Sequence record: OQ708376.1
Strand: one strand, 5' to 3'
Length of the DNA stretch: 64,000 nucleotides
In this document: in pieces, positions 9,681-63,848 of the stretch
Position numbering within the stretch: the stretch's first letter is position 1
Layout: every line of letters starts with the position of its first letter
The notes under the pieces: model-generated
The model's database searches: none
What the model was told of the DNA's origin: nothing
The model's input: only the letters and a program-made list of their open reading frames with translations
Position numbers and translations under genes: made by a program

Positions 9681-10031
9681 ATGAAAATTATTTTATTTTT
9701 TGTATGTATGTTAATGTGTGGATTGTCATATGCTGAACCATTGGAAGGTTTAGTTTGTACAGATGGTAATATTAAACATATCTATCAAGGTGATAGTGAC
9801 GATCGAGATATTGTATATATTGATGGACAATCATATACGTTTGTTAAAGAGCATACAGTAGGCGACATTAGCTTCACTGAGTTTTCTAACGACACAGACC
9901 CTAACTTCTTAGCGTTTATTGAAGTAGATGTATATGAAGATAGTAATGGCACACAATATGCTAAATTAGTTATGATGCGTCGTGGTGCTAAAGAAACTAG
10001 TTTTGGTGGCTTGTGTAAATATAAGGATTGA
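9681..10031 (+). CDS. exported acidic protein
   Basis: Signal peptide ending SYA; GGAGG RBS. Confidence 0.7.
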   Translation: MKIILFFVCMLMCGLSYAEPLEGLVCTDGNIKHIYQGDSDDRDIVYIDGQSYTFVKEHTVGDISFTEFSNDTDPNFLAFIEVDVYEDSNGTQYAKLVMMRRGAKETSFGGLCKYKD

Positions 10032-45471: not shown

Positions 45472-45585
45472 AAACTATTTTAAAAGTATTTGTAGAAAGT
45501 ACTTGCACCGTACTGATAAAAGCGTATAATGTTTTACATCGAGAGCGGGAACACTTCCCGCTACACATTAAGAGAGATTAAAACG

Positions 45586-45948
45586 ATGGCGACTCAAATC
45601 AATAAAATCATGCTTAACCTGGTAAACTTCCGCGATGAGATGAAAGGTCTTCCGGCTGAAACTGTAAAAATTCACATTGCAGCTTATCGGGAACTTATTG
45701 CAATGTTGCCGCTTAAGCGTGAACAATACGCCGCTACTTTGATGCTGGATTCAATGATCCATATAATGATCTCAAATGATTTGACGATGGTTTATCAGTA
45801 TATGGGCGAAAATTTCGCGGTGTGTAGTAAGCCAGTACCAGGGATGGCAACAACTGAGGAATTGCACGGCTTAAACTTAAAACAAGATGCATGGGATAAT
45901 ATGCCTCGTTTCCTGGTATGGGCTGACAGTGGCAAAATTTACAAATAA
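45586..45948 (+). CDS. early hypothetical protein
   Basis: Start re-called downstream of the promoter hairpin and RBS. Confidence 0.75.
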   Translation: MATQINKIMLNLVNFRDEMKGLPAETVKIHIAAYRELIAMLPLKREQYAATLMLDSMIHIMISNDLTMVYQYMGENFAVCSKPVPGMATTEELHGLNLKQDAWDNMPRFLVWADSGKIYK

Positions 45949-46041
45949 GTTTAATAAAGTACTTGCAAACTATGTTTAATGGCGTATAATGTTTTACATC
46001 AGGTGGGGAATAGTTCCCCACTATATAAGAGGATTAAAAAA

Positions 46042-46281
46042 ATGGCTAAATCAAAAATGTTCTTAGGTCACAAAAACAAAACTCATTGGAATGTAAGCCT
46101 TTGGATTAATAACGATGAGGGATTGTATCGGTTGGCCCAGGACTTTATTAACGATAGCACTAATCGCAATGATGCGGCCCGTCATATGATGTTATTTTTA
46201 GAACAGACTGGACAAGATAAAACACCGGACGGATTCAAATATAGCACTACTGCGATCCGTGCGGCGATGGTTGGAATGTAA
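46042..46281 (+). CDS. early hypothetical protein
   Basis: GAGGA RBS; WNVSLWINNDEGLY motif. Confidence 0.75.
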   Translation: MAKSKMFLGHKNKTHWNVSLWINNDEGLYRLAQDFINDSTNRNDAARHMMLFLEQTGQDKTPDGFKYSTTAIRAAMVGM

Positions 46282-46367
46282 TAGAATTTATTTAAAGTAC
46301 TATCATTTTTTTGCGATAGTACTTTATAATAGTGTTTTATTCATACACCAACGATAAGGGCAACAGC

Positions 46368-46634
46368 ATGAAAATTAAGTATTTTGCGACGCGTGAACAA
46401 GCTCGGATCGCCGCACGCCAGGACGGGGCAACGTTTAAAGATATGGGCGTACAATCGGAACGTGGTAAACGTTGGGCCATTGTAAAGCGTAGTACCGCCA
46501 GATCATTACAGTACTGGTTAGCGGCCTTAAAAAGTCCCGATAGTGTATCGCGTCGAGTGGTAGAAATAAAGCTCGACCGAAAGGGCAACCGCGTGACCGT
46601 GTACCGTACTAAAAAGATTGCAGTACTTGAATAA
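46368..46634 (+). CDS. basic early protein, paralog of 58345..58740
   Basis: K(Y/F)(F/Y)ATRE.AR..AR..GA.FKDMG and DRKGNRVTVY shared. Confidence 0.75.
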   Translation: MKIKYFATREQARIAARQDGATFKDMGVQSERGKRWAIVKRSTARSLQYWLAALKSPDSVSRRVVEIKLDRKGNRVTVYRTKKIAVLE

Positions 46635-46715
46635 AAAGTACTTGCAAACTATGTTTAATGGCGTATAATGTTTTACATCGAGAGCGGGAACTCTTCCCGC
46701 CTATAACCTGGAGTA

Positions 46716-46952
46716 ATGAAAATGACTAATATGTATATGACTGAAGTTAAAACCGTAAAAGATACTACCACGAATAAAACTACTTACTTACAGCGGATCT
46801 GTGGTGTATGGCAACGTATCAGCAAATCAAAGTACTTTAAATTAACATCATATGCAAACCGTTCGGATTCATTCAGTACTGAAATAAAAGGTAATAAAGT
46901 ACACCAATACGGCACTTATTATTATTATAGCCTGGACGCGATTGCAGTATAA
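46716..46952 (+). CDS. early hypothetical protein
   Basis: Own promoter, GGAG RBS. Confidence 0.7.
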   Translation: MKMTNMYMTEVKTVKDTTTNKTTYLQRICGVWQRISKSKYFKLTSYANRSDSFSTEIKGNKVHQYGTYYYYSLDAIAV

Positions 46953-47020
46953 GCAGTTTACAAATCTTTACAATTGCCGGTATTGACTTATTTTGTCAGT
47001 ACTGGCATAATGTATTCATT

Positions 47021-47125
47021 GGCAGATAAGCCGTAGCCCATAGGGTGCGGGAGTGTATCTATAGAAAAATTAGTTTAGTATAGTTACAATTGTGCACCCG
47101 GTGGGTTAGCTGTTGTCATGGGGTA
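47021..47125. ncRNA. convergent pair of promoter-driven mini-RNAs (CCC-N3-GGG-TGC family)
   Basis: + promoter near 46984 and - promoter near 47153 face each other with no ORF between; 11 family copies in total. Confidence 0.5.
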
Positions 47126-47237
47126 TATTATACCAGTACTTGATAATGCTGTCAATACTTTTTTTTTACTATTCAGTACTGAAAACTATTTTTAAAAAGT
47201 ACTTGCAAACTATGTTTAAAGGCGTATAATGTTTTAC

Positions 47238-47312
47238 ATCAGGACGGGGAACGAAATAAGTAACTTCCCGTTAAGTAGCCCAGGAGTAAGGCACACGAAA
47301 AACTCCCCTGAT
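47238..47312 (+). ncRNA. candidate ~75-nt structured RNA, copy A (B 57150..57222, C 49793..49865)
   Basis: Starts at the promoter TSS; closing stem ATCAGG/CCTGAT, two inner hairpins, TAAGTAG linker, covariation among copies. Confidence 0.55.
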
Positions 47313-47380
47313 AAAATAGTTTGACAAATGTTTTTAAAAGCGTATAATACTTACATCAACTACTGAATGAGGGTTACAAA

Positions 47381-47992
47381 ATGAAAACTATCACTACTAC
47401 TACTTATGTTATGGCTTTTTCTGAATTGAACGCAGAACAACAAACGTCAGCTATCGAACTGGTTCGGGAACGTGAAAAAAACTCAAACGACAATTATTTT
47501 TCTGAAAGTGAAATTGAATACTATAAAGAAACAGTACTACCGGAATATGGCATTAATGACGCTGAAATACAATTCAGTGGTTTTTGGTCCCAGGGTGACG
47601 GTGCATCAATCAGTACTGACCACGTTGACGCAGTGAAGTTTTTACGCAAGGTAAGAGCATTAACTAAGTATCGCTCAATCCGTCACTTGCTGAATGAAGA
47701 TGATTTGGCGATGAGTGTAAAACGTTCGCACTCCCACTACTCGCATGAGAATACTGTAAGCGGGTACATTGAATCGGCTTACACTGATTTAACCGCAAAA
47801 CAAGAAACGTTAGTTAATGAGCTTGAGGAACTACTCACTGAAACTATTCGTGAATTGTCCCGCAAGTTGTACCGTGATTTAGAGAATGCATATGAGGATC
47901 AATTCACTACTGAAAACATTACGGCACTGATTGAGGGTAACGAATATCAATTCAATGTTATTGATGGCGTAGTAGAATCAATCGAATATTAA
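47381..47992 (+). CDS. acidic early protein with FSGFWSQGDGA motif
   Basis: GAGG RBS, own promoter, 203 aa. Confidence 0.8.
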   Translation: MKTITTTTYVMAFSELNAEQQTSAIELVREREKNSNDNYFSESEIEYYKETVLPEYGINDAEIQFSGFWSQGDGASISTDHVDAVKFLRKVRALTKYRSIRHLLNEDDLAMSVKRSHSHYSHENTVSGYIESAYTDLTAKQETLVNELEELLTETIRELSRKLYRDLENAYEDQFTTENITALIEGNEYQFNVIDGVVESIEY

Positions 47993-48084
47993 TTTAAAAA
48001 GTACTTGCAAACTAAGTTTAAAAGCGTATAATACTTTATATCGAGAGCGGGAATAGTTCCCGCTACTAATGAGGAATACTACAA

Positions 48085-49675
48085 ATGAATACTTTTACCT
48101 TCGCTCAATTGAACGCCCTGGATGTATTGTCTGATGCTTTGCGGGATGCAACTGAAAGCGGTTTATTTGACAATGTTGACATTCACCCTGATGTAATTAA
48201 TAATTTTTGTGATGCTATCGCAGAAGTACTGGAAGATCTAAAAAAATAATAGAAAGTACTTGCAATTAGTTTTCAGTACTGTATAATGGTTTACATCAAA
48301 GGGAGAAATGGTTCTCCCTGGTAATGAGGAAAATACAATGGCTAATATCACTACTCTTTCCCAACTGGAAGCACTGGTTAAATCTATGCGGGAACATGCT
48401 GACAAAATCGGCGTACAAGATCCAGCCGTTTGCTTCTGCGACGAATTGAATGATGATACCCTGGTAATAGCAGAAGTCCAGGACGTTTCTAACTATTCCT
48501 CGCGTTACACTGGCGGCGTAGCAAATAAAGGTGACTTCTGTTTATACCTTACAAAATAACAACGCGGGGAGATAATAACTCCCCGTTACTTTTTCAGTAC
48601 TGAATCATTTAATAGACGGATCTCGGCACCCGGTGGGTTAGTGACTGTTTCGTCTTGATGTAGTAATTATGCCAGTACTGGATGCACTTGTCAACAATTA
48701 TTTTCCAAATACTTTTTATTAAAATACTTGCAATTAGTTTTTAAACGCGTATAATGTTTTGCATAGGGGGAGCGGTTCCCCTGGTAACTAAGGAATAATA
48801 AAATGCTTGAACAAATCAAATCAACGTCTTCGAATGTAACGGGAACGGTAGCACACTTTACTAGTGATGAATCGCGGGGCGTTCCCTATTGTGCTGTACA
48901 TGTAAACACTGAGGGTAACTACTGGTTTACGGTTTACGGATCATATTCATTTGGACGGCCTGGACATCAAAAAATTCTGGATAAAGTACAACCAACGGGT
49001 AAAAATATCACTGCCGAAATGTTTTATAAAAAATCATAAAGTACTTGCAATTAGTTTTTAGTACTGTATAATATTTTACATCGCAAGGGGAAACGGTTTC
49101 CCCTGGTAACTAAGGATAATCAAATGAAAATTGCAATCATCGCCCTGGCTTTATCTGTTTCCTCTTTCGCTGTTAATGCGTCATTAGATGTAAGTAGTGA
49201 AAAATTCATTCAGTGCACTGTTGCAATGACCGATGAAAGAACTGGCGAGATTGTATTAAAGGATTTAGAGATCCAGCCGGAAGCATTTAAAAACGGCCCG
49301 TTCCATGAAGAAGACGAAAACGGTAGCACGACAATTTATTATGATGCCAGTACTAAACGCGGTTCGGTCACTGTAATGGATACCGAGAAAGTAACTCATA
49401 CCGGCGTTATTAATTGCCGTTGATAGATACTACGGGGTAACATCATGACTAAGCGAATTGTTTTACTTAACGAAAGCAGTACTACACAACTACTTAACGC
49501 CGTGCATTATGATATTGAAACGAGCGTTAATCTTATCAGTACTGTAGTTCTGTTGGACACTGGAAAGGTAGCCAATGATAAAGCGATTGCAGGTATACTA
49601 ACGGATCTTGTGCCTGGTAGCAGTGCACCAATAACGTTAAATGGTAAAGTGTTTAATATTTTACTCACTGATTAA
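48085..49675 (+). CDS. five early genes (48085..48249, 48338..48559, 48803..49039, 49124..49423 with signal peptide, 49445..49675)
   Basis: Most have their own promoter-hairpin-RBS; terminator AGCCCACC-T-GGTGGGCT-T run at 49682. Confidence 0.7.
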
Positions 49676-49908
49676 GTACATAGCCCACCTGGTGGGCTTT
49701 TTTGTTTTTGTAGTATCGTAGTACTGAGATACTTTGAAAATAGTTTTAAAAAAGTAGTTGACATTACCACAGAAAAGCGTAGAATGTATTACATCAAGAC
49801 GGGGAGCACTAAGTAGACCGCCAGTAAGTCGAACGAAAAACTGGACACGTCGAGAAAACTTTGATACACTAATAAACGTAAACTAAACTTTAATTGAGGA
49901 TTTATAAA

Positions 49909-50391
49909 ATGGCTAATGTAAAATCATTCATCAAAGCACTGGTAGCAAATGAAACTAACGTCGCGGCTGAGATCCTGGCTGAACTGGATAACGATACCAT
50001 GAAAGCGGTACGCAACAATTTTAACATTGCGTACAGTGAAGCTAAAGAACTGCAAGCCAAAAAGGTAGCAGAACTGGAAGAACAGAAAAAAGCCCGTGAA
50101 GCAGAACTACAAGCAACAATTGAAAGTATTCAGGCGGCAGTGTCTGGATTGGATCTGGAAGTGGTTGTAGAAATGGCACATAAAGCCCTGGCGGTTAAGT
50201 ACGGTGAAGATAAGCCGGAATCTAAACCTAAAAAATGGATTCAAGAACGTGTTACTGTAGTACTTGATAACGGTGAAGAACATTTGATTCCTGTACGCGG
50301 TAACTGCATTGCGGTAGTACTGGACGCTATCAAAGAAAGCGGTATGACTCGCGAGGAATGGATCGAAGCTCATCGCAAAGTTGAAGCATAA
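49909..50391 (+). CDS. H-NS-like protein with a degenerate DNA-binding motif
   Basis: N-terminal coiled coil, K/P linker, C-terminal DNGE...RG..AVV.DAI.E.G...EEW aligning by eye to H-NS ENGE...QGR.PAVI..AM.E.G...DDF. Confidence 0.5.
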   Translation: MANVKSFIKALVANETNVAAEILAELDNDTMKAVRNNFNIAYSEAKELQAKKVAELEEQKKAREAELQATIESIQAAVSGLDLEVVVEMAHKALAVKYGEDKPESKPKKWIQERVTVVLDNGEEHLIPVRGNCIAVVLDAIKESGMTREEWIEAHRKVEA

Positions 50392-50676
50392 CAATTAAAG
50401 TACTGAATCACTAGCCCACCTTAAACAGTGGGCTTTTTTGTGTCTGTAGTATTCCAGTCCACCAGCACCGCCTAGAATCGATTCTAACGCATTAAACTGA
50501 TTATCTGATACATCGCCCTAGCTGGTGGCGTTAAGGTCGTTAGAATGCGATTGAGAGCGTTTAAAGTATTTTGCAAAAAGTAATAAAAAGTACTTGCACG
50601 ATTAAGAGATTAGCGTATAATGTTTTACATCGAGAGGGGGAAACGGTTCTCCTTCCAAATCAAAGGAATCAAAACA

Positions 50677-51203
50677 ATGGCTATTATCATTACTCGCGTA
50701 TCTGGTACTACTGGCAACGAACAAGTAGTTGCAGTCATTACTAACAAGGCAGGTGCGGAATTGCAAAATGCAATGAATACCTGGGCCGTTAATGAGTTCG
50801 GTCAGTGGGCAAGTGTAGCATACATTGAAACCTATCAAGTGCCGTCGATTAGTTTAACTGATTTGGGCGTTGAGCGTATCCTTTGCCTGGATGAATTAAA
50901 TTAAAAAAAGTACTTGCAAAGTAAATCGAATAAAGTATAATACATTACATCAAGGGGAGAAATGATTCTCCCCACTACAAGGAAACTAAAATGGCTATCA
51001 TTACTAAAATCAAAGTTAACAAGACTATCGTTAAACTGGCAGAAGTGAAAGAAGGTTATAAAGTATCTTGGTGCGGTATGTATCGGACGTTCGCAGATAT
51101 AGATGATGCGATCAATTATTACAGTGACACGGTTAAAAACTTTGTTCGTGCTGATGTGGTTATGGCAGTGGCAACATATAAAGCAGCGAAAGAAAGTAAG
51201 TAA
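50677..51203 (+). CDS. two early hypothetical genes (50677..50904, 50991..51203)
   Basis: Own promoter cassettes and RBS. Confidence 0.7.
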
Positions 51204-51294
51204 AAATATTATCACAGTACTATTGACATAGTTTGATAGTACTGGCATAATAGATTTTATCAAGACGACACATATTAATTTAAGGAATACTAAA

Positions 51295-51618
51295 ATGGCT
51301 AAAACTATCATCAACACCGTTTCCCTGGCTGCAATCCATGCAATCAATGTTGACGGTAAACGTTGGACTGATTCATATGGCAATACTTATCATTCTTGTC
51401 ATGTAAGCGTTGAACTGGATAACGGCTTGAATGATCTGGCGGTTGAATCATTTACTTATGGCTATGAGGATGCATATCAACAAACGGCGGTATCACTCTT
51501 AAAGGAATCAGTAGACGGGCTTGATACTGTTGAAACCTCCCTCTATCGTTTGTGCAATGATCTTAATATCCCGTTGCATTGTACTGTACAGGATGTAAAA
51601 CGTAAAAAAGATCTTTAA
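51295..51618 (+). CDS. early protein, paralog of 57926..58249
   Basis: RWTD..GNTYHSC.VS...FTYGY...DVKRKKD shared. Confidence 0.8.
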   Translation: MAKTIINTVSLAAIHAINVDGKRWTDSYGNTYHSCHVSVELDNGLNDLAVESFTYGYEDAYQQTAVSLLKESVDGLDTVETSLYRLCNDLNIPLHCTVQDVKRKKDL

Positions 51619-51698
51619 TTAGCTTTACTTTATGCAGATACTTTGATATAGTGTCTGCATAGGGGAAAGAAATTAAATCAACTTAAGAGGAAAGTAAA

Positions 51699-52728
51699 AT
51701 GAAAAATATCAGTACTTTAATCGATGCAGGTACACATGTTCGTCGGTCTATGGTTGCAACCAGTTCTACAAAACAAGTAGCGAGCGGTTATCTTGTATTT
51801 GTGCACGATGGAAAACTCCTGGAACGTTCAATCAATTTTGATGTTAAAAACAATTGCCGTTTTATTATCTTTCGCCGTGAACAATATAAAATTGATTTGC
51901 CAGCGAAGCCCATTAGCGGGGCGTACAACGTGCAATCATTGTTTGAGCGTCAACCTTACACCTATTAATCAAAACATCGTTAGCGGTCGATTTAGGCCGC
52001 TTATATTGGGGATTATACCATGAACGTTAATCAAGTACTGAATGAGATCGAAAGCATCATTAAACCGATGAAGCGTACTGATGCTATGTTAACACCGGAA
52101 GAATGCCGCCTTTATGAGCGTTACAGCGTCGAACAAGTCCAGGCAATGGCTATGGCTACCCCAGCCGTTTCACCGCCTGAGAATGCGTTACAGGACGTTA
52201 CAGGGGATTATATCATTAATCCAGTACTAGGGAAGATGACTGCAATCACCGAAGATCAAAAAGACTACTTAAGCCAGTACTTAAAAGGTTAATTAATATG
52301 CTTACTGTACAGGATAAGATCGACATCTTAAAGGTTAATATGTATGTGATTGATGCCGTACCTGGTAAAGTATTTGCATACGATGATAGTACTGTAAGCG
52401 ATTTCTACTATAGCCAGGACGTGGGGGATCTTTCTGTACAGTCGGTTATTGAAAACGTAGTTAATGCAGCGTATGAGCATTTACTTTCAAATAGTACTTG
52501 CAATTAGTTTTTAAACGCGTATAATGTTTTACATGAAGGGGAGAAATGATTCTCCCCAATAACAGGAGAAACAAAATGAAACAATACAACGCTCGGTTTG
52601 ATGTTACTATCGGTAACGGCAAAGGTCAATTCTCTTTCAGTACTCGCCGCAGTTATACAGAAAACTTCCTGCGTAATTGTGCACTGACCGCCGCTCAAAT
52701 TAAACACTATTTTCAGGCTAAAAAATGA
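51699..52728 (+). CDS. four early hypothetical genes (51699..51968, 52020..52292, 52298..52507, 52576..52728)
   Basis: RBS and co-orientation. Confidence 0.65.
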
Positions 52729-53168
52729 AATCATTAGCTTATTACAGTTCGGCCCTGGTCGGTGCATTGATCGCGGCATTGTTAGTAACCTATCTATTCT
52801 TTATGGTGATTTAAATGAATCCAACAGGTTTAAACTATAAAAGTTGTTCTGCATTTACGAAAGCAAATAAAGCGAATGCACGTAAAGCGAAAGTACAGGA
52901 ATACATCAAGCAAGGCATGACGCGAAAAGCGGCGATTATAAAAGCTAAAAATAAATGAAAAAAGTGGTTGACTTCGGTCAGCCATTTTGTTATTATATAT
53001 TCATTGAGAGATAGCTCACTAGCCCACAGGGTGCAGGAGTGTATCTATTGTATGAGTATTGAGTACTGAAAACTATTTTTAAAAAGTACTTGCAAACTAT
53101 CTCAATAAGCGTATAATGTTTTACATCGAAAGGGGAAACGGTTTCCCCTGGTAATAAGGAAACAAATC

Positions 53169-53819
53169 ATGACTATCTCAATTGCTCAATCTAACTTTGA
53201 AAATGAAATCATCGCCCAGGCACTGCGTTTAAATGATGGTCGGGCCGAAATTAATTACGGTTTCAATTCAGGCGGTTGCGAAAAATATCAGTACTTTGTA
53301 ACGGCTGATGGCGGTGTCCTGGGTATCAATACAGTTATTGTAAACATCCAAAAAATTAATTTCAATGATCCAGACGATAGCCAGTTTTACATCACTGGCG
53401 TAGACGTGAACTATGAGGATGACTCACTAACTGATGATCACACTGGCGAGCGGTTAGAAAGTGCATACGGTGAAGATGATTATCAGTCCGGTCCAGAAGA
53501 TTTCGAATAATATAAAAAAATAGTTTGACAATAGATTATAGTACTGTATAATAGTTTACATCAAGGGGAGAAAAACTTCTCCCCACTAACAGAGAGAGAA
53601 AACAAAATGGCTAATATCCGGTCGAAATTAAAAAATGCAAAACAAGTTTTATTTTCAGATCATGAATACTTTAATAAAGATATTACAGGAGTTACAAGTA
53701 TCAAGGAAGTAAAAGAAAAAACCGGCGTTTTGTGTGATGTGCGATTAGTTGGAACATTTGGGAATAACGTGCTATATCGCTGCGGTGATTACAATTTTAC
53801 ACTGACTATCATTAACTAA
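53169..53819 (+). CDS. two early genes (53169..53510 acidic; 53607..53819)
   Basis: Own promoter cassettes and RBS. Confidence 0.7.
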
Positions 53820-54958
53820 AAATATTATCACAGTACTATTGACATAGTTTGATAGTACTGACATAATAACTTTTATCAACTACACTATTAAGGAATTAAA
53901 AATGGCTATCATCGCAAAAACTGAAATCGTTGGTCTGGATTCTATCATCATGACGTTTGAAGATCAAAAAGGTATGTATGTAGTTTCATATGGTGATTAT
54001 GTTCGGGAGTATGAAACGGTAGACGAAGCCTTTGAAAGTTACATTCGCCAGGTGAATAAAGCATACGACGATTACCGCTAAAATATATTACCAGTACTAT
54101 TAAAGATATTGACAACGTTTGATAGTACTGTATAATAAGTTTTATCAACAGTAGTTAACTTAACCTAAGAGAGAAATAAAATGATCGCACTGGATTCATT
54201 CATCGACGCAGTACTGGCAAAAACTGGCGAGGATCTGACCGCAGAACAATACGCAATGATCGAGCAATGCCAGCAAGACGGTAAATCGGTGAAAGATACT
54301 GTTAAGATTATCCGCAAGATGTAAGATTATAGCCCACTGGTTAACGCTGGTGGGCTTTAATTCATTACCCTATACAATGCCAGTACTAAACCGTTTATCT
54401 CGTTAGAATGCGTTACAGGACGTTTAACAATGATTAGCATGAAATCAGTACAAAAACAAATAGAAACATTATCAAAAATTAAACGTAAACAGTACTCCTT
54501 AGAATATACAATCAATGGTAACTATCATCTAATGAAAGAGAATAATTTTATAGTCATTGATGAATCATTGCAAATCATTAGTATAGTACTGAAAGCATTA
54601 ATCAATGACAGAAAAAAATTAAAATAAACTATTGACAATATCATCAAGTACTGGCATAATACTTACATCAAGACGAGAACGTCACTAACCCATAGGGTGC
54701 ACAAATGTAACTGTATAATATTGATCAAAAAATGATCTGATCAATACTTGATCAATTTGCGTAAAGTAGTATAATTCTATGCAGTTGGTTAGACGAAAGG
54801 TTATGATTAGTAGTGCAAGTGTATAAAAATTTTCATGGTGTATCGTTTCGCACATATGGGGATGAATATGTGGTATCATGTGGATTGGAAAAAGTAAGAA
54901 CAAGTAATATTATTGTCGCATTACAGTACTATAGTATTTTTATAATGAGGTTAAAATA

Positions 54959-55216
54959 ATGGCTGTAGGATTCGCGAAAGATGGGGCCGAACAAGACGAG
55001 ATTAACGCAGTGATTCAGGCCGCCGTTAACCACGCTAGAAAGCAAATTAACGCACAAATAGAATCACTGATACATTGCCTCGACTGCGGCGATATAATCC
55101 CTGAGAATCGACGCCAGGCCGTTAAGGGATGTAAGTACTGCATAACTTGCCAGGAGGATCATGATAGTACTTTTAAACGTCCCCCGCGTAATTGTTGGCA
55201 TAGATCTATGAGATAA
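54959..55216 (+). CDS. DksA/TraR C4 zinc-finger protein (YbiI-like)
   Basis: MAVGFAKDGA N-terminus; CxxC-G..IPE.RR.A..G-CxxC..CQ. Confidence 0.85.
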   Translation: MAVGFAKDGAEQDEINAVIQAAVNHARKQINAQIESLIHCLDCGDIIPENRRQAVKGCKYCITCQEDHDSTFKRPPRNCWHRSMR

Positions 55217-55279
55217 AAAGTATTGACAGTACTGAAAGATAGTGTATAATGTTTTATATCTTAACTGAGGATAGAAATC

Positions 55280-55636
55280 ATGGGAATACAACATATCACG
55301 CGTACTACTGACAATGGCGAGATCACTGGTTATCAAGTACAGGGCAAAGTAGCACAATTGCAGTACTGGTTTGTTAAACGTGGAATCATTGCACCGGATC
55401 TTGATTATGACCGTGTAGCGTTTATTGATTCTCTTTATGTTGATCCTGATAGTCGGGGCAATGGTGAAGGTAACGAATTAATGAATGCCTTTATTGATGC
55501 CGCCGATGATTCAGATTGTATCATTTTAGAATGCGATACGGGAGAAGATAACGCCTTTAATCTTAAAGAATGGTACGAAGGTTTCGGATTCGAGGTACTG
55601 ATCGATAGTGAATATCCTATCATGATTTTATCATAG
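55280..55636 (+). CDS. GNAT-family acetyltransferase
   Basis: IDSLYVDPDSRGNGEG (motif A) and WYEGFGF (motif B). Confidence 0.8.
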   Translation: MGIQHITRTTDNGEITGYQVQGKVAQLQYWFVKRGIIAPDLDYDRVAFIDSLYVDPDSRGNGEGNELMNAFIDAADDSDCIILECDTGEDNAFNLKEWYEGFGFEVLIDSEYPIMILS

Positions 55637-55708
55637 TACTTGCATTTAGTTTTCAGTAGTGTTATAGTACTTACATCAAGGGGAAACATCTTCCCCTACT
55701 AAGAGGAA

Positions 55709-56550
55709 ATGAAAATGGAAAACTTATCAAGTATTTTAGTACAAGATGATTTCGGTAATCCTGGAAGTGCTATCATTGTTCGGGGTAATAAAGCAACATT
55801 TGTTATTGCTGGTGGACCTGTACAGCGTAGCATTAAAAACAATGCCGTTACTATTAATAATGTACGCTATCGCTTAGATAAAGAATTGATTCATAAACTG
55901 TAATATTAATTTAATAGAGGATAACAATAAATGTACATTCATACTACTATCACAAAGGAAGTCCGTTGCCAGTTCGAAAGTATTCCGGGCGTATGTTTCA
56001 TCACTGGTACGTTTTCCCCTGGTGATCGTGATAATCCAGTACTGTTACAATTACGCCATCCATCATGGGATAAAGCATTTGATCTACCGTTGAATGAATT
56101 CGCAACTACTGCTGAAAAGTACATTAAAAATATTCGCGAGAATGATCGACTATTCATTAATGCTTTTAGTGATTCCGCGTTAAGCGAGATCCACGGTGTA
56201 TTGGTTGCAATCATGGAATCAATGGAGAAAACTAAATTCAAACAAGGTGAATAAAAACTATTGACAAGATAATCTAGTACTGTATAATAAGTTACATGAA
56301 GGGGAGAAATGATTCTCCCCACTGAGAGGAAAGAAAAATGCAAGGTCAACTAATCGTTCGTAAATGGTCTGATACTAACGCTAAACCGTGGGATGTACAA
56401 TACATCGGACCGGATGGGGTATCACGTTATCAGCCTGGCGTAACGCATAGTACTGAGCAATATGCCGCCGCTCACCGCGAACGCCTGTTAGAATCCATGA
56501 AACAGGGATACGGTGAAAAATTCATTCAAGATCATTGGCTGAAAGATTAA
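55709..56550 (+). CDS. three early hypothetical genes (55709..55903, 55931..56254, 56338..56550)
   Basis: GAGGA RBS; promoter cassettes. Confidence 0.7.
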
Positions 56551-57291
56551 TATAAGGAGTACAGCTTATGCAAATGAATCCGATGATTATTGTTTTAGCT
56601 GTACTTATGATCATTCATGCAATAGTAGAAGTATTAACGCAATCAGGAGTAATAAAATGATTCAAGTAGAATTATCAGTACTGAAAGATCTGTTTTATCG
56701 GTTAGGTACTACTGGCGAGTATCCTAAAAGTGATACCGCAAAACTTTTTGTATCACTCGACTTATGGCAACGCGAACAATTAGTAATGTCCTGGCGTAAA
56801 GGTAAAGCAGATAGCGAGGTGAAAGCATGAAAGAATTCTTATTCGAAGTAGTGTTTCAAGGTGTCGGTAGTAACCAACTGATTCGCTCAAGTGGTTACAA
56901 TGTTAACCAGGCATGGAATAACATTAAACAAATGTACCCGAACGCTATCACCTATCGCAACCCGAAACAAGTTTAAAAATAATTGAAAAAGGGATTGACT
57001 CCGGTCAGTCCCTTTGCTATTATATACGCATAGAAACAAATCAGCCCACAGGGTGCATAAATGTATCTATTGTTTGCTGGTGGCTAGTACTGAAAACTAT
57101 TTTTAAAAAAGTACTTGCATTGTACTTAGAATCAAGTATAATGTTTTACATCAGGACGGGGAACGAAACAAGTAACCCCGTTAAGTAGTCCAGGAGTAAG
57201 ACATAAGAAAACCTCCCCTGATAAAATAGTTTGACAATAGAAAGTAAACGAGTATAATACTTACATCAACCACTGATAAGGAAACATTAAA

Positions 57292-57567
57292 ATGCGGATT
57301 CTACTGACAGCTAACGAAATCGAACAAGTACTGACTACTAACCTGGAAGACTGGAAACGTGAAGCAGATATCCAGGCGGTTCAACGGCTTAACGATGAGT
57401 TAACGCCGGATGACTTAAGCAAGATTGTAGATCCTCAATTCTACGAAGATATCCACGACACCGCGTTAAGCGTCGAGGATGTACTAGATAAGCACTACAT
57501 TGATATTGATTTGCAGGTTTACGGTCGTAAAAACTTTATCACTATTCACGACATTTACAATAATTAA
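57292..57567 (+). CDS. small highly acidic early protein
   Basis: About 20 D/E versus 8 K/R in 91 aa. Confidence 0.75.
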   Translation: MRILLTANEIEQVLTTNLEDWKREADIQAVQRLNDELTPDDLSKIVDPQFYEDIHDTALSVEDVLDKHYIDIDLQVYGRKNFITIHDIYNN

Positions 57568-57653
57568 GTATTGACAAAGTATCTTAGTACTGTATAATAG
57601 TTTACATCGAGAGGGGGAATGGTTCCCCTCCTAACAAAGAGAGAGAAATAAAA

Positions 57654-57836
57654 ATGGCTAAATGCACTATCTGTAAGAAAGAAATCGTATTAGTTCCAAG
57701 TGCCCGTGAACGTGCCGCTCGGTTCGGTGGCAAAGCGTCAGACTATACAAAAATGTTTACTACCCATGCAGCTTGCCAGGTAGCAAAACGTTCACAAGAA
57801 AGCGTAGAATTAATGCGTAAACTTTCCAAAAAATAA
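57654..57836 (+). CDS. small Zn-binding early protein
   Basis: CxxC...HxxC. Confidence 0.7.
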   Translation: MAKCTICKKEIVLVPSARERAARFGGKASDYTKMFTTHAACQVAKRSQESVELMRKLSKK

Positions 57837-57925
57837 GTATTGACAAAGTATCTTAGTACTGTATAATAGTTTACATCAAGCGAGGGGAATGGTTCCCCTC
57901 CTAACTAAAAGAGAGAGAAATAAAA

Positions 57926-58249
57926 ATGGCTATGATCCTTACCCAGAAAGTAGAACTGAAAATTGTAACCTCCTTTGACATTAAAGTTAATCGCTGGACT
58001 GATCGGAACGGTAACACTTACCACTCTTGCTACGTGTCCGCGTTAATTGGCGACCGCTGGGAAGACTTGGGACATGAAACCTTTACTTACGGTTACGGTA
58101 CACAAGGAGAATACACGGGCTTGGAGATCATTAAAGAAACCGTTATAGGTTTCAACCCGAAAGAAAAAGTTATTCACCGCATCGAAAAAGAGATTAACAA
58201 AGAAATAACAGTTCGCTACTACGATGTAAAACGTAAGAAAGACATGTAA
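57926..58249 (+). CDS. early protein, paralog of 51295..51618
   Basis: Shared motifs listed under 51295. Confidence 0.8.
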   Translation: MAMILTQKVELKIVTSFDIKVNRWTDRNGNTYHSCYVSALIGDRWEDLGHETFTYGYGTQGEYTGLEIIKETVIGFNPKEKVIHRIEKEINKEITVRYYDVKRKKDM

Positions 58250-58344
58250 TAGAATCCATTTAAAGTACTATTTGACATTGCCCAGATAGTACTTTATAAT
58301 AGACTCTAACTTGTAGTACTAACTCAACTAATAGGATGTATACC

Positions 58345-58740
58345 ATGATTACTAAATTCTACGCTACCCGTGAAGCTGCCCGTATTGTTGCACGCGAGGA
58401 AGGAGCAGCATTTAAAGACATGGGCAAAGATGCACCGAAAGGTCAACGCTGGGCCGTACAGTTCAAAGAAATCTCTGATATCGTGAATTCACCGGAGCCA
58501 GTACTAACAGCAGCAGAACTAAAACGAGCGGATTTACTGGCGGCAGTACTTAACGCACAAGATGAATTTATCGCTGATTCTGATATCAAAGTACAGACAA
58601 ACCATACCGCTTGGACTCACGCGGATCACCTGGCAAACCTTAAGCGTCCAAGTGAACTGGTTCGCAACCAGAAAGAGATCCGACACGACCGTAAGGGTAA
58701 TCGTGTAACAGTATACAGTAAACGCCGCCAGGTTATCTAA
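58345..58740 (+). CDS. early protein, paralog of 46368..46634 with a longer middle segment
   Basis: Shared N- and C-terminal motifs. Confidence 0.8.
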   Translation: MITKFYATREAARIVAREEGAAFKDMGKDAPKGQRWAVQFKEISDIVNSPEPVLTAAELKRADLLAAVLNAQDEFIADSDIKVQTNHTAWTHADHLANLKRPSELVRNQKEIRHDRKGNRVTVYSKRRQVI

Positions 58741-58802
58741 TAACTTGCAGTACTAACAACACGGCGGGATCAGTTCCCGCCTTTTTTATAGGATAAACTA
58801 AA

Positions 58803-59057
58803 ATGATTAAGGTACAACTATCTAAAGATAATATCTTGCGGGTACACTATAAAGCACCACAGAGAATCATCACAAAGGCCGTACAGCTTGCTAATGAGTT
58901 TATTAATGGTAACCTATTACCAAGGAAGTTAAGCAACGGAAAACTGCGTGTAATCGATGTAGACACTAACAACAGAATAGTAATTGAGAACACAGGAAAG
59001 ATAAACCTATATGAACACCAACAATATAATAAGAAAATAAAACTAATATCACGTTGA
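58803..59057 (+). CDS. possible ParE/RelE-like fold protein
   Basis: P.RI..KAV.L...F..G...R.L...I.V...R.V...H..YNK pattern. Confidence 0.35.
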   Translation: MIKVQLSKDNILRVHYKAPQRIITKAVQLANEFINGNLLPRKLSNGKLRVIDVDTNNRIVIENTGKINLYEHQQYNKKIKLISR

Positions 59058-59110
59058 CAGTACTCAATTGTTTTAGTACTATGTACATATACCAACACGG
59101 GAGAAACAAA

Positions 59111-59630
59111 ATGAAATTATCTAAAATCGAAAAGAAAACTATTGATGAAGCAGTTAAGCACGGTTATACCTTTCGTAATGATTCACATTTTACCAATTTT
59201 CAACAAGGGTATCGTACTATTAAAAAACTCATTGACAAAGGTTTATTAGTTGAAGTCAATAACGGCAATGGTATTGAGTATCAACCAACACAAGACGCAT
59301 TTTATTTTAAGAAATATAATATTATCTAATTGACAGTACTCAAATGTTTTAGTACTATATGTACATACCAACACGGGGAAAAACAAAATGATTACTTTAG
59401 AAAAACGTATCAAAGAAACTACATCGCTGGTGGAACTGTTAACAGTACTGAAATGCCGTACTACTCGGTTTAGTACACCGGACTTTATTAATATGGTTGA
59501 TGTTAATGGTCGCTATCGTATCACGGTCGAACAAGGAGCGGCGAAAGTATTCAGTACTAAAAACACTAAGGAAGTGATTCACGCTGTAAGTGTTAAAAAA
59601 GTAGTTGCCATTGATAGTAAAGTACTGTAA
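59111..59630 (+). CDS. two small basic early genes (59111..59329, possible wHTH; 59388..59630)
   Basis: Near-duplicate upstream promoters; TIKKLIDKGLL in the first. Confidence 0.65.
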
Positions 59631-59661
59631 GATAGTTTCATTAACTCAAGGAGAACATGCA

Positions 59662-60246
59662 ATGCGTAATTATACTAAATTCATCCGTACCCTGTCAGAA
59701 ATGGAAACCAACAAAGAGATCCTTTCAGCTTGTCGGTTAGCTGGTCTGGAGATCATCGGTGCGGGTTCTTCCCGTATTGTATTCGCTTTAAATGATCGGT
59801 TAGTGATTAAGGTCGCGAATTGTGATGCGGGTGTAGAACAAAATGAAACTGAATGTAAGGTATGGAATTTTTTAGATTATGACCGCCCTCAATTGAAACA
59901 GTACTTTGCAAAGGTGCATATGCATTTATGCGATCCTGATAATATGTTTATCGTTATGGATCGGTTGAGTACTGCAAGTAAAGGCAGTGTAAAGCACGTA
60001 AACGCGTGCAATGAATTAAAGTACAATATTAAACGTAATGCCATTGAACGCCAGCACCGCTTTGCTGATGCACTACAACACGTTGATGATACATTATCAA
60101 CACTAACGATAAGAGATATCAGAAAACAGAATATCGGCCAGGATCGTAATGGCCTTATTAAAGTACTTGATTACGGTTTAACCCGCAATATCTGGAATCA
60201 GTACTATAAAAAGCGTGATGTAGAAGCAAGTAAGGTAACACGATAA
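59662..60246 (+). CDS. Ser/Thr protein kinase-like
   Basis: IGAGSSR.V, VIKVA, QNETE, DIRKQNIG, LDYG. Confidence 0.8.
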   Translation: MRNYTKFIRTLSEMETNKEILSACRLAGLEIIGAGSSRIVFALNDRLVIKVANCDAGVEQNETECKVWNFLDYDRPQLKQYFAKVHMHLCDPDNMFIVMDRLSTASKGSVKHVNACNELKYNIKRNAIERQHRFADALQHVDDTLSTLTIRDIRKQNIGQDRNGLIKVLDYGLTRNIWNQYYKKRDVEASKVTR

Positions 60247-60467
60247 AAAAGATTAAAAAAGGGATTGACTCCGGTCAGTCCCTTTGCTATTATATATTCA
60301 TTGAGAGATAACTCACTGACCCATAGGGTGCGGAAGTGTATCTATTATATAAGTATTCAGTACTGAAAACTATTTTTAAAAAAGTACTTGCATTGTACTT
60401 AGAATCAAGTATAATGTTTTACATAGAGAGGGGGAAATGGTTCTCCCTGGTAATAAGGAATAAAATC

Positions 60468-62500
60468 ATGACTACAATGACTTGCATTTACGCTTCCAAT
60501 CTTCTGAATGATGCGGCCTTTAATGTTGATTCAGAATATCAATGTTATCGGGATGAAAATAAAAAAGTTTTTGTAGTTGATAATAATGGTTTCCATATTG
60601 AATTACAATCCGGTTTCACTGGTGTTGATGGTAAATCAGTGTGGGGCGTACAGGATGATAAAGGCACATATCATTTTAAACGTAATTAAGTATTGACAAA
60701 GTATATCAGTACTGTATAATAGTTTACATCAAGGGGAGAATAGTTCTCCCCGATACTAAAAGGAAACAAAATTATGTCCAGCTACTCCGCTACTATGATC
60801 ATTAAAGATATGAACGGTAATCCTACTTCTGCTGGTGGATCATTTGGAAACATTAATTTAGATGGTCGGTTATCCATGCAATCAGCCATCGATGCAGCGA
60901 AAGAAGTTTTTAAGAATGAATGTACTGTTAGTAAGATGGATTATATGGGATTCGCTATCGAGAAAACTAATCGTTTTGTGAACTACAAAAATCCACTGAT
61001 GATTGATACTAACCTGAAAGCTAACGAAGTGGGGTACTTATTATGACAGTAGAAGAAGTTAAAAAAGTACTGGCAGTACTACGCTATCATAATCATTGCA
61101 AGGTGAAGAATGATCCTGATTATGTTGATTCATCCCTGGAGGAAGACACATTAAACGCAATAAGCCATATGCAAACATTAGCAAAGCGTATGACCGAAAA
61201 GAATAGACCGGACTATATCGGAAATAAAATTTAAAAAGTACTTGCATTGTAGTTAGATTAACGTATAATGTTTTACATAGAGCGGGGGAATAGTTCTCCC
61301 GCCAGTCCAGGAGATACACCATGAACACTATCGAAATCACTATCAATGCACACGTATACGACAACGTAGTACTGCAAACTACTATGACCGCTAATGATAC
61401 CAGTACTTTGCGGAATACCGTTGTAAGTGCTGTATGTGCTGCAATCGGTGATGTAGCCCTGGAAAATGCAGAACACATCAACAACGGTTTCACTATGTGC
61501 AAACGTGATAACGCAAAACATATCATCTTAGAAGGTTACGGCGGTGTAGAATATAATCTTTATATGAAAAAAGTACTTGCATAATAACTAAAACAAAGTA
61601 TAATGTTTTGCATAGGGGGAGATATCCTCCCCCACTAAAAGGAGTAATAAAATGGCTAACTTTGATGAACTGATGCGGGAAGTAGCTAACCTGGCAGAAG
61701 AGAAGAAATCATTCGATTCTATCTATAACACCGCTCACCGTGATTCAGTACTGGCATGTACTCAGGATCAAAAAGATGAACTAATCGCCACCTATCATGA
61801 AGCATGGAAGTACTACCGACAATGGGAGAAAGAAGAAAGTGAGTCTACCATTGACGGCCTCAATAATCTAATCTAAAAGTTTTATTTCAGTACTATTGAC
61901 ATAGCTTGATAGTACTGATGTAATAACTTTACTAACTACAAGGGGAAACATAATGGAACAGTTCACACAATATCGGGTAAATCCTCAAGCTATGGCCTAC
62001 GTAGAAGACCATAAAACATTACCAGTACTGCAACCAGTTAAAGGCCATATCTATCGTGCTATGTCGTGGAGTACTGCACAGGATGGATATAAAACCGTTG
62101 CCGTGGGTATGTATTGCGGGAATGGTGAATGGTTTGATCCAAATAATCCGGTAGCCATTGACAGTACTGAAAAAATGAAATGGGCCGACTACATCGAAGA
62201 TATTTCATAAAACTATTTGACAGTACTAACCAGTAATGTATAATGTTTTACATAGAGCGGGGGAATAGTTCTCCCGTCAATAGTTTGGAGTAAAACATTA
62301 TGTCTATCGCTATCGCCCTGGTTGAAGTACTGAAAGAAGCTAAAGCCAACCTTATCGATGTACAGATTAAGGAATTACAAAATGGTTTAATCGGCTGTAC
62401 TTGTACCGCTGGTGGAGCGGCAGACTATCGGGAATTCGAATCACTTGAATCGATGGTCCGTTATCTTACCATGATCGTAGAAGATTGGAGAATCATCTAA
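60468..62500 (+). CDS. seven small early genes (60468..60689, 60774..61046, 61043..61234, 61321..61584, 61652..61876, 61953..62210, 62300..62500)
   Basis: Nearly all have their own promoter, hairpin and RBS. Confidence 0.7.
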
Positions 62501-62746
62501 CAAAAAAGAATAAAAAAAGGGATTGACTCCGGTCAGTCCCTTTGCTATTATATACTCATAGACAAAAACTAGCCCACTGGGTGCAGGAGTGTATCTAAAA
62601 TATATAGTTAATAACGGTGAGTAACTATCTGCTGGTGGGGTGAAAACTATTAATAAAAAAAGTATTGACAAAGTATATCAGTACTGCAATAATGTATCTC
62701 GTAGGGCGGCAATGGTGCGACGGCCCACAAAGTTAGGAGATTCAAA

Positions 62747-63848
62747 ATGAGTACTTCAATCGCTATCGTTAAAGCTTTCATCCGTACCAATGTTTCATCT
62801 GTATTCATCGACGGTCTGGATCGGGAAGTAGAATACTCAATCATTATCGCACAGACTGCAAACGGTGCTCGGTATATCCTTAATGATAGTGAAGCAAATC
62901 ACTACTACTTCACTAAAGCTACTGGCTTTAAACGCATCGATGCTGACGTAGTATACACTAAGATGAATAAGCTGGTAGACAAGATTAACGCGAAAGGTAC
63001 TATCGATTTACAGTACTGGACCGAAACCGATCCAGAATATGGATCTCACCGCTACCTGAATCCAGGTATTAAAATGTAAAAAGTACTTGCATAGTACTTA
63101 GAATCAAGTATAATGTTTTACATAGAGAGGGGGAAATGGTTCTCCCTCCTAAATTAAGGAGTTTTATCATGACCTTCTCAATCAATTCCTTCGCTGACGT
63201 TTTAGTACTGGCTCGGACTTTCGGTAAAGATGCACTGGAGTACGCTGTAAGTAATGGTACTATCCAACCGGAACAGTGCCGCATCATTGGAAACTGCAAA
63301 CGTTGGGCGGTATCCAATACTATTGCACTGGAAAACTTCCACGATGGCAACAATGAATATTCTGTTGATGTAGTATTCGAAGCCGTTGATCTCGGCGGTA
63401 TCTATAATACTAACCTGAATGATGTGCGTATCGTTCGCACGGGGTTCGGTGCTTATGATGTATCTATTCGTGAAGCTATGAACACCGGATACATTAGCAA
63501 GGACTTACTTGCTCACATCATGCAGCTGTGTACGGAACGTAACGAAGCACGCACTATCTTAGGACTGTAAGCGTTACACATCACCAAACATCATAGGCCG
63601 CCTTGTAGCGGCCTTAACTATATCAGGAGGGCATACATATGTTCTATACAGTATACAGCGTTCTAGGTACTATTGCAGGCGTACATGATAACGTCAATGA
63701 TGCTATGCGTACAGTACTGCAACAGGTTCCACTAAAGCCTAAGACCATTAAGCAGATGACAGCACGACTAACCAGGGCGACCGATGGCGTGGAAGTATGG
63801 CAGGACTACGGGGATACACAGATAATCGTTAGCGTAACGAAGGATTAA
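62747..63848 (+). CDS. three early genes (62747..63079, 63169..63570, 63639..63848)
   Basis: AGGAG/GGAGG RBS; promoter cassettes. Confidence 0.7.

Follow-up and report, generated by a model that had tools for sequence, protein, structure and literature searches.

The 64,000-nucleotide (nt) stretch of record OQ708376.1 analysed here, referred to below as the window, comes from a 121Q/PBECO4-like, Asteriusvirus-like jumbo coliphage. Its early region, at about 44-63 kilobases (kb), is a dense array of sigma-70 promoters, approximately one for each small gene, with some 35 near-consensus promoters at 45503-63114 on the + strand. Behind most of these stands a standard leader, in which ACAUC and a 5' hairpin (GGGGAGAA..UUCUCCCC) run on to the ribosome-binding site. 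At three places in the array, designated copies A, B and C, an early promoter is followed by a longer element, which an annotation made from the sequence alone (the original prediction) had described as a multi-stem RNA (Table 1). Copies A and B are each succeeded by a second promoter and then a gene; behind copy C no good second promoter is found, and the copy simply forms the 5' leader of the following gene. In related records with annotated ends the copies fall within the long direct terminal repeat.

All three copies lie where they had been predicted. A degenerate 30-nt pattern of the core matches exactly three sites in the window, which are A, B and C, and none in 100 shuffles. The covariance model search that had been proposed as a check was carried out on the 64-kb window with a model of the core (R1), and gave 56 bits for each of the three copies and 10 bits for the next best match. 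Each copy begins 7 nt past a TATAAT or TAGAAT -10 box, as does the transcript from the A1 promoter of phage T7. The predicted transcription start is reasonable, since several promoters of the window share with T7 A1 both the first ten transcribed bases (AUCGAGAGGG) and the 7-nt distance from the -10 box; the spacing and the initial transcribed sequence are those of the mapped A1 start.

When folded alone, copies A (-19.4 kcal/mol, z -2.4) and B (-19.2 kcal/mol, z -2.5) both adopt the proposed three-way junction. A closing helix (P1) encloses a hairpin (P2), which is the standard GGGGAA..UUCCCC early-leader hairpin with an enlarged loop; this is followed by the linker TAAGTAG, invariant in A, B and C as claimed, by a second hairpin (P3), and by the 3' strand of P1. 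Copy C lacks P2, and its stability when folded alone is ordinary (z about 0). The reported change of the P3 arms, from GGAGT/ACTCC in A to CCAGT/ACTGG in C, was found as described, but B pairs only GGAG/CTCC (4 base pairs). Likewise, the closing helix ATCAGG/CCTGAT is present in A and B, whereas ATCAAG/CTTTGAT in C is possible. At that place the relative EJP2 retains AUCAA/UUGAU; an inner helix, GACG/CGTC, has support that is no weaker, since LTH01 shows GACGG/CCGTC there, and the CTTTGAT of C overlaps a weak promoter-like site, TTGATA-N17-TAAACT. The relatives of copy C (LTH01, EJP2 and Hallingskeid) all keep a closing helix, with differing sequences.

Copies A and B are non-coding, as had been stated, because the indels between them break any reading frame: in A a frame of 31 codons starts at an ATG inside the -10 box, but in B a 2-nt indel introduces a stop. 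They do end just before a promoter, a consensus TTGACA-N16-TATAAT standing 8 nt on, but there is no terminator between, so transcripts from promoter 1 should run through promoter 2 into the gene.

The repeated unit had been put at about 75 nt. Only a core of about 40 nt, comprising the linker and P3, is conserved, and the remainder consists of variable helices. The core is made up of single-stranded UAAGUAG, 4 nt, and the 5-base-pair hairpin P3, whose loop of 14-16 nt, UAAG-N6-GAAA(A), carries UAAG on its 5' side, GAAA(A) on its 3' side and six variable apical residues. The best-conserved positions, UAAGUAG and the loop UAAG...GAAA, are unpaired.

Over 42 distinct sequences P3 is 95.7% paired, two-sided changes occur at 5/5 pairs, and the four inner pairs are never broken. 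Its covariation score was reached by 0 of 500 shuffles, and sliding the partner strand cut pairing to 12-45%. A smaller, hand-anchored alignment of P3 agrees with this result, and the bias of the model-fitted alignment is limited because the conserved flanks fix the register. The stem types are CCUG/CAGG, CCAG/CUGG, GGAG/CUCC, CUUG/CAAG, GUCAG/CUGAC and CAAC/GUUG.

The other two helices are conserved in position rather than in sequence. P2 abuts the 5' side of the linker in the A type, the Kae01 type, lineage L193 and the T7 type, with unrelated sequences (ACGGGGA/UCCCCGU, GGGAUG/CAUUCC, GAUAAC/GUUAUC and CCGG/CCGG). P1, according to per-sequence folding, is found in every non-T7 (myovirus or jumbo phage) lineage, where the nucleotides at the transcript start pair with the 3' edge of the element to form a compact domain of about 75 nt; its sequences are again unrelated (AUCAGG/CCUGAU, GCGGC/GCCG, CGGGG/CCCCG, GACGG/CCGUC and AUCGAA/UUCGGU). 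The summed length of the P1 helices is 42 as against 28.6 in shuffles (0 of 2000 reached it), the support for P1 and P2 being per-lineage folding and this crude shuffle test rather than a phylogeny-aware statistic. Between Hallingskeid and L144 a C-G pair of P1 changes to G-C, and compensatory or wobble changes are seen in further close relatives (Kae01 versus L140; L242 versus L264; and the G-U pairs in P2 of winA and 121Q). When the lineages were aligned with MAFFT and folded with RNAalifold, P3 alone was recovered; P1 and P2 are missed because they differ in sequence and length. In the T7-like phages P2 and P3 are nearly invariant and hence uninformative, save for one CUUG/CAAG variant. That the structure belongs to the transcribed (sense) strand follows from its fixed orientation and from the G-U pairs in P3 and P2. 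We conclude that a conserved structured RNA module, encoded on the sense strand, opens early transcripts made by the host sigma-70 RNA polymerase, and that A, B and C are three copies of it.

The pattern of conservation bears on the idea that the module is an elaborate 5' stabiliser, that is, a variant of the phage's standard hairpin leader that guards only against 5'-end-dependent decay. Such a relationship is suggested by P2 of A and B, which is the hairpin of most early promoters with a larger loop, and by P1, which buries the 5' triphosphate end. A stabiliser, however, needs no conserved single strand, yet it is UAAGUAG and the loop residues that are most conserved between distant phage families while the stems vary, and the promoter-2 transcripts of A and B do without such a hairpin. 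We therefore consider this explanation unlikely.

Comparison with known RNA classes supported the claim of a structured RNA, apparently an uncatalogued one: it is strand-specific, shows compensatory changes, and has no Rfam counterpart even at permissive thresholds. Rfam 15 gave no hits at gathering score in the window, and with the cut-off relaxed to E<=10 neither the window nor six relatives showed a hit that overlaps the element; ARAGORN detected no genes for transfer RNA or transfer-messenger RNA in the window. An intrinsic terminator was rejected, there being no U-tract behind A, B or C. Checks by eye for CsrA sites, Hfq ARN repeats, sigma-dependent pause (-10-like) elements, loop-E and k-turn motifs were unconvincing. 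We found no catalogue entry or paper for the motif, the older T7 literature being covered only in part, so that an earlier description is possible.

A self-cleaving ribozyme or ligand switch, of which the original prediction had offered the ribozyme, received no support and is very improbable. A three-way junction with conserved unpaired purines would suit either, and small ribozymes are frequent in phage genomes. On the other hand, the Rfam searches gave no ribozyme or riboswitch match, and the core sequences of the hammerhead, twister, pistol and hatchet ribozymes are absent. There is also no expression platform, either terminator or sequestered ribosome-binding site, a promoter or a spacer of 45 nt or more separating A, B and C from the ribosome-binding site. 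Moreover, the architecture varies, P2 being present or absent and P1 being absent in T7-like phages.

The element is not private to this phage but is common to at least four unrelated phage groups, T7 included. The A/B type, at about 90-100% identity, occurs in 45 records of 121Q-like, rV5-like and phAPEC8-like phages, the carriers beyond the 121Q-like group including members of Justusliebigvirus (outra, muut, EmilieFrey) and Vequintavirinae (A73, W70 and others). Its arrangement (promoter, module, promoter) is constant, and the downstream genes differ. Searching with the C type brought up Erwinia phage Hallingskeid, Klebsiella phage fENko-Kae01, Salmonella phage 7t3, EJP2, LTH01 and, unexpectedly, T7-like phages as well. 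The core is present in 587 T7-like (Studiervirinae) records, among them phages of Escherichia, Klebsiella, Salmonella, Yersinia, Enterobacter, Citrobacter, Cronobacter, Pantoea, Serratia and other genera. Pattern scans of IMG/VR and of metagenomes contributed more lineages, although the first IMG/VR pattern gave mainly chance matches. The hosts are essentially all Enterobacterales, plus that of one Vibrio phage, ICP3, which has a divergent copy; no copy was found in Pseudomonas phage gh-1 or Salmonella phage SP6. Every instance is in the sense orientation, within about 60 nt downstream of a sigma-70-type -10 box. A host origin, or mimicry of a host RNA, was rejected: BLAST found no match in 5,426 E. 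coli genomes, and the pattern none in 185,579 GTDB species genomes.

Two Vequintavirinae, A73 (L004 2440-2640) and LTH01 (L156 240-440), have the same upstream gene, terminator and promoter at one locus, with the A-type module (three-way junction) in one and the C-type module, without P2, in the other. The two architectures are therefore interchangeable alleles. A B-type copy in CMSTMSU (L159 301-375) has deletions that disrupt P3 and P1; these are probably assembly errors, the record being flagged UNVERIFIED.

These comparisons also make it improbable that the conservation reflects a DNA-level element, such as an UP-like element or activator site that serves the next promoter, or a palindrome bound by a protein, with the hairpin being incidental. 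In T7-like phages P3 ends 2-3 nt before the -35 box of the next promoter, A2, with GAAAAAC at the position of a UP element, and in some records promoter signals are annotated over the module. However, P3 is separated from the next -35 box by 2, 16-17, 21, 35 or 42 nt depending on the lineage, and in the L242 lineage no promoter follows at all, which argues against a site at a fixed distance. The arms change in sequence while their complementarity stays, the G-U pairs, read from the opposite strand, would become A-C mismatches, and it is the orientation to the upstream promoter that is invariant.

Our favoured explanation, to which we give a probability of about one in three, is that the module acts in cis, as a leader domain engaging the elongation machinery or some other factor of the host. 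The domain would fold on emerging from the polymerase and expose its two purine-rich UAAG motifs to a host component, most likely the elongating host RNA polymerase itself or its Nus- or Rho-related partners. By an anti-pausing or anti-Rho effect, like that of put or nut leaders, this contact would keep early transcription productive over its first, untranslated part; the module would act neither as a terminator nor as a ribozyme or metabolite switch. That the partner belongs to the host is suggested by the promoter-proximal sense placement, the compact 5' domain, the exposed conserved purines, the restriction to phages that use the host polymerase early, and the spread across unrelated phages that have hosts in common. 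A role on the elongation complex is ranked first by analogy, from the precedent of putL of phage HK022 and from the position of boxA. In approximately 33 of the 41 podovirus-type instances a perfect rrn-type boxA lies 25-385 nt downstream. In one IMG/VR lineage (L242 4060-4200, L218 5330-5470 and L264 800-960) a single promoter is followed by the module and, 25-35 nt on, by boxA; there is no promoter between them and no second promoter, which is a nut-like layout.

Several observations weigh against this explanation. The jumbo phage and myovirus copies have no boxA nearby, and this includes A, B and C, near which no GCUCUUUAACAA-like sequence was found in the window. Nor do these copies precede an obvious terminator or a long untranslated stretch in need of protection, since nearly every early gene has a promoter of its own. 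Because the strong second promoter of A and B yields transcripts without the module, the gene downstream is independent of it. T7 A1 transcripts stop at the early terminator TE in vitro, which argues against a strong, put-type suppression of intrinsic terminators. Kinship with HK022 put was rejected, model R1 giving a best score of 8.4 bits (E 1.5) over the whole HK022 genome with filters off. Finally, the association with boxA in T7-like phages may represent two independent features of one leader. Within the window itself the support for a cis mechanism is weak.

Separately, the window contains a single exact boxA, a perfect 13-nt rrn-type sequence (TGCTCTTTAACAA) at 9841-9853 on the - strand, for which the chance expectation is about 0.002. 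Being antisense within an open reading frame on the + strand (9681-10031), it probably does not serve as a leader element.

Nearly as likely as a cis role is that the module acts in trans, as a decoy or sponge. Promoter 1 would make an abundant, stable RNA of about 75-80 nt that, during the first minutes after infection, titrates a host RNA-binding factor such as Hfq, RNase E or a sensor involved in defence or stress; P1 would seal the 5' end, the 3' end would be trimmed to the stem within the AU-rich spacer, and promoter 2 would then express the gene. The self-contained, closed domain is what such a decoy calls for, as is the dedicated strong promoter immediately followed by another in A, B and many relatives. 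The three copies per genome, doubled when in the terminal repeat, also fit, and so do the patchy, cassette-like distribution in rV5-like and phAPEC8-like phages, with the swap of A and C types at the A73/LTH01 locus, and the nearly exclusive association with hosts of the Enterobacterales. Yet a terminator or defined 3' end is found in no lineage, and the module of C, EJP2 and the L242 lineage forms no more than a section of a messenger RNA leader. There is no recognisable partner motif, CsrA GGA sites occurring only in the A type and Hfq ARN triplets numbering just two, and as no host RNA resembles the module nothing identifiable is mimicked.

Returning to the broader proposal of a host-directed role in cis or in trans, we suggest tentatively that the module may represent a new class of host-takeover RNA, a horizontally exchanged element of about 40-75 nt that would reprogramme a conserved host component without a phage protein. 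If so, the first RNA made after DNA entry would bind RNA polymerase, the Rho/Nus machinery, or an RNA-binding or defence protein, in T7-like podoviruses, rV5-like and phAPEC8-like myoviruses and 121Q-like jumbo phages of enteric bacteria alike. That at least four unrelated groups, sharing only their hosts and an early reliance on the host polymerase, carry the module points to a host target that is important in the first minute of infection. Whether by polymerase modification, Rho/Nus control or a decoy, it would give phage biology a protein-free device for early takeover, and it would also be a compact part for synthetic promoters.

Table 1. Coordinates of the module copies and neighbouring features in the window.
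Feature	Position	Strand	Description	Basis
Copy A	47238-47312	+	Three-way junction; P1 47238-47243 with 47307-47312; P2 47244-47250 with 47265-47271; linker UAAGUAG 47272-47278; P3 47283-47287 with 47302-47306; P3 loop 47288-47301	Folding, pattern, covariance model
Copy B	57150-57222	+	Three-way junction; P1 57150-57155 with 57217-57222; P2 57156-57161 with 57176-57181; linker 57182-57188; P3 57193-57196 with 57213-57216	Folding, pattern, covariance model
Copy C	49793-49865	+	Without P2 hairpin; linker 49810-49816; P3 49821-49825 with 49840-49844; GACG 49798-49801 with CGTC 49848-49851; optional AUCAAG 49793-49798 with CUUUGAU 49859-49865	
Early sigma-70 promoter of copy A	47203-47230	+	TTGCAA-N16-TATAAT, A-rich upstream stretch	+1 taken as 47238 on the model of T7 A1 (7 nt past the -10 box, same AUC... 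start)
Second promoter after copy A	47321-47348	+	TTGACA-N16-TATAAT; drives gene 47381-47992	12/12 consensus match
Gene downstream of copy A	47381-47992	+	203 amino acids, phrog_5162, unknown function	
Early promoter of copy C	49758-49785	+	TTGACA-N16-TAGAAT	
Gene led by copy C	49909-50391	+	160 amino acids, phrog_27871, unknown function	
Early promoter of copy B	57115-57142	+		
Second promoter after copy B	57231-57258	+	Drives gene 57292-57567 (91 amino acids, phrog_14947)	

The gene behind copy C had been called H-NS-like. Copy C is indeed its leader, but the label found no support, there being no match to H-NS (the Histone_HNS profile or solved domains) in Pfam, NCBIfam or PDB sequence searches. 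The N-terminal half of the protein is charged and helical; the likeness to H-NS is one seen by eye only, between the DNA-binding domain of H-NS and the C-terminal ~40 residues (VLDNGEE..IPVRGN..DAIKESGMTREEWI). Homologues with about 30% identity follow the module in the jumbo phages Kae01 (Klebsiella) and Hallingskeid (Erwinia), which indicates that the pairing of module and gene is old. Immediately upstream of the ribosome-binding site of this gene (49885-49908), and of its Klebsiella-phage homologue (L122, ~1630-1657), a AACUUUAA stretch resembles the 'epsilon' translational enhancer of T7 gene 10.

Two further repeats were noted. The palindrome AGTACT occurs 280 times in 1-64000, as against 21 +/- 4.6 in dinucleotide shuffles (an excess of about 13-fold); it is found in coding and intergenic DNA alike and forms part of early promoters (AAAAGTACTTGCA; TAGTACTGTATAAT). 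A perfect 28-nt hairpin, AAAGGGATTGACTCCGGTCAGTCCCTTT, is present at 56988-57015 and 60258-60285, with a variant at 52961-52988; it holds a TTGACT -35-like hexamer and sits immediately upstream of early promoters.

Among known systems, the put RNAs of HK022 invite comparison. A put-like polymerase modifier was one option of the original prediction, and the likeness holds for position but not for sequence: like putL it is promoter-proximal, and it has no sequence relationship to HK022 put. putL starts at +3 of its promoter and is about 73 nt long, and put RNAs act on host RNA polymerase without a phage protein (PMC9378689). Both putL and putR share with the module the form of a promoter-proximal, multi-helix nascent RNA of about 70 nt that is present in more than one copy per genome. 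A put RNA is further characterised by binding to the beta' zinc-binding domain and by suppression, in cis, of pausing and termination. The put RNAs, however, have two long irregular stems and a triplex, whereas the module has short helices and a large conserved loop; furthermore, T7 A1 transcripts terminate at TE and put-modified polymerase does not. A likeness to nut- and rrn-type antitermination is seen in the podovirus relatives, which pair the module with a perfect rrn-type boxA downstream, and in the P3 loop, which ends in GAAAA as does the loop of lambda boxB. The P3 loop, at 14-16 nt, nevertheless differs from the GNRA-like pentaloop of boxB, and no N-type protein is common to these phages. 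Stabiliser hairpins of the ompA type, and the phage's own standard leader, likewise begin at +1 to +5 with the 5' end buried in a helix; the module differs from them in its conserved single-stranded motifs and second conserved hairpin, which stabilisers do not need.

The counterpart in T7 itself, at nt ~547-597, lies downstream of the A1 start (nt 498) and ahead of the A2 -35 box, and is therefore certainly transcribed. The A1-A2 leader of T7, and its counterparts in T3-, K1F- and KP32-like phages, contain the same module: UAAGUAG, 4 nt, and a P3 loop of the form (A)UAAG-N6-GAAAAA. A CCGG...CCGG hairpin precedes it, and it lies about 50 nt past the first host promoter and just before the next. 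These leaders differ from those of the window in having a separate 5' hairpin and no P1 closing helix, and their P3 hardly varies (CCUG/CAGG), directly adjoins the A2 -35 box and is followed downstream by a boxA. In the literature searched, in which older T7 work is only partly represented, we found only papers that print the A1 region, and none that assigns this stretch a function. Although T7 is among the best-studied genomes, about 50 nt of its first transcript are thus apparently a conserved structured RNA without an assigned role, and since T7 and E. coli are fully tractable, the role of the module is directly testable there.

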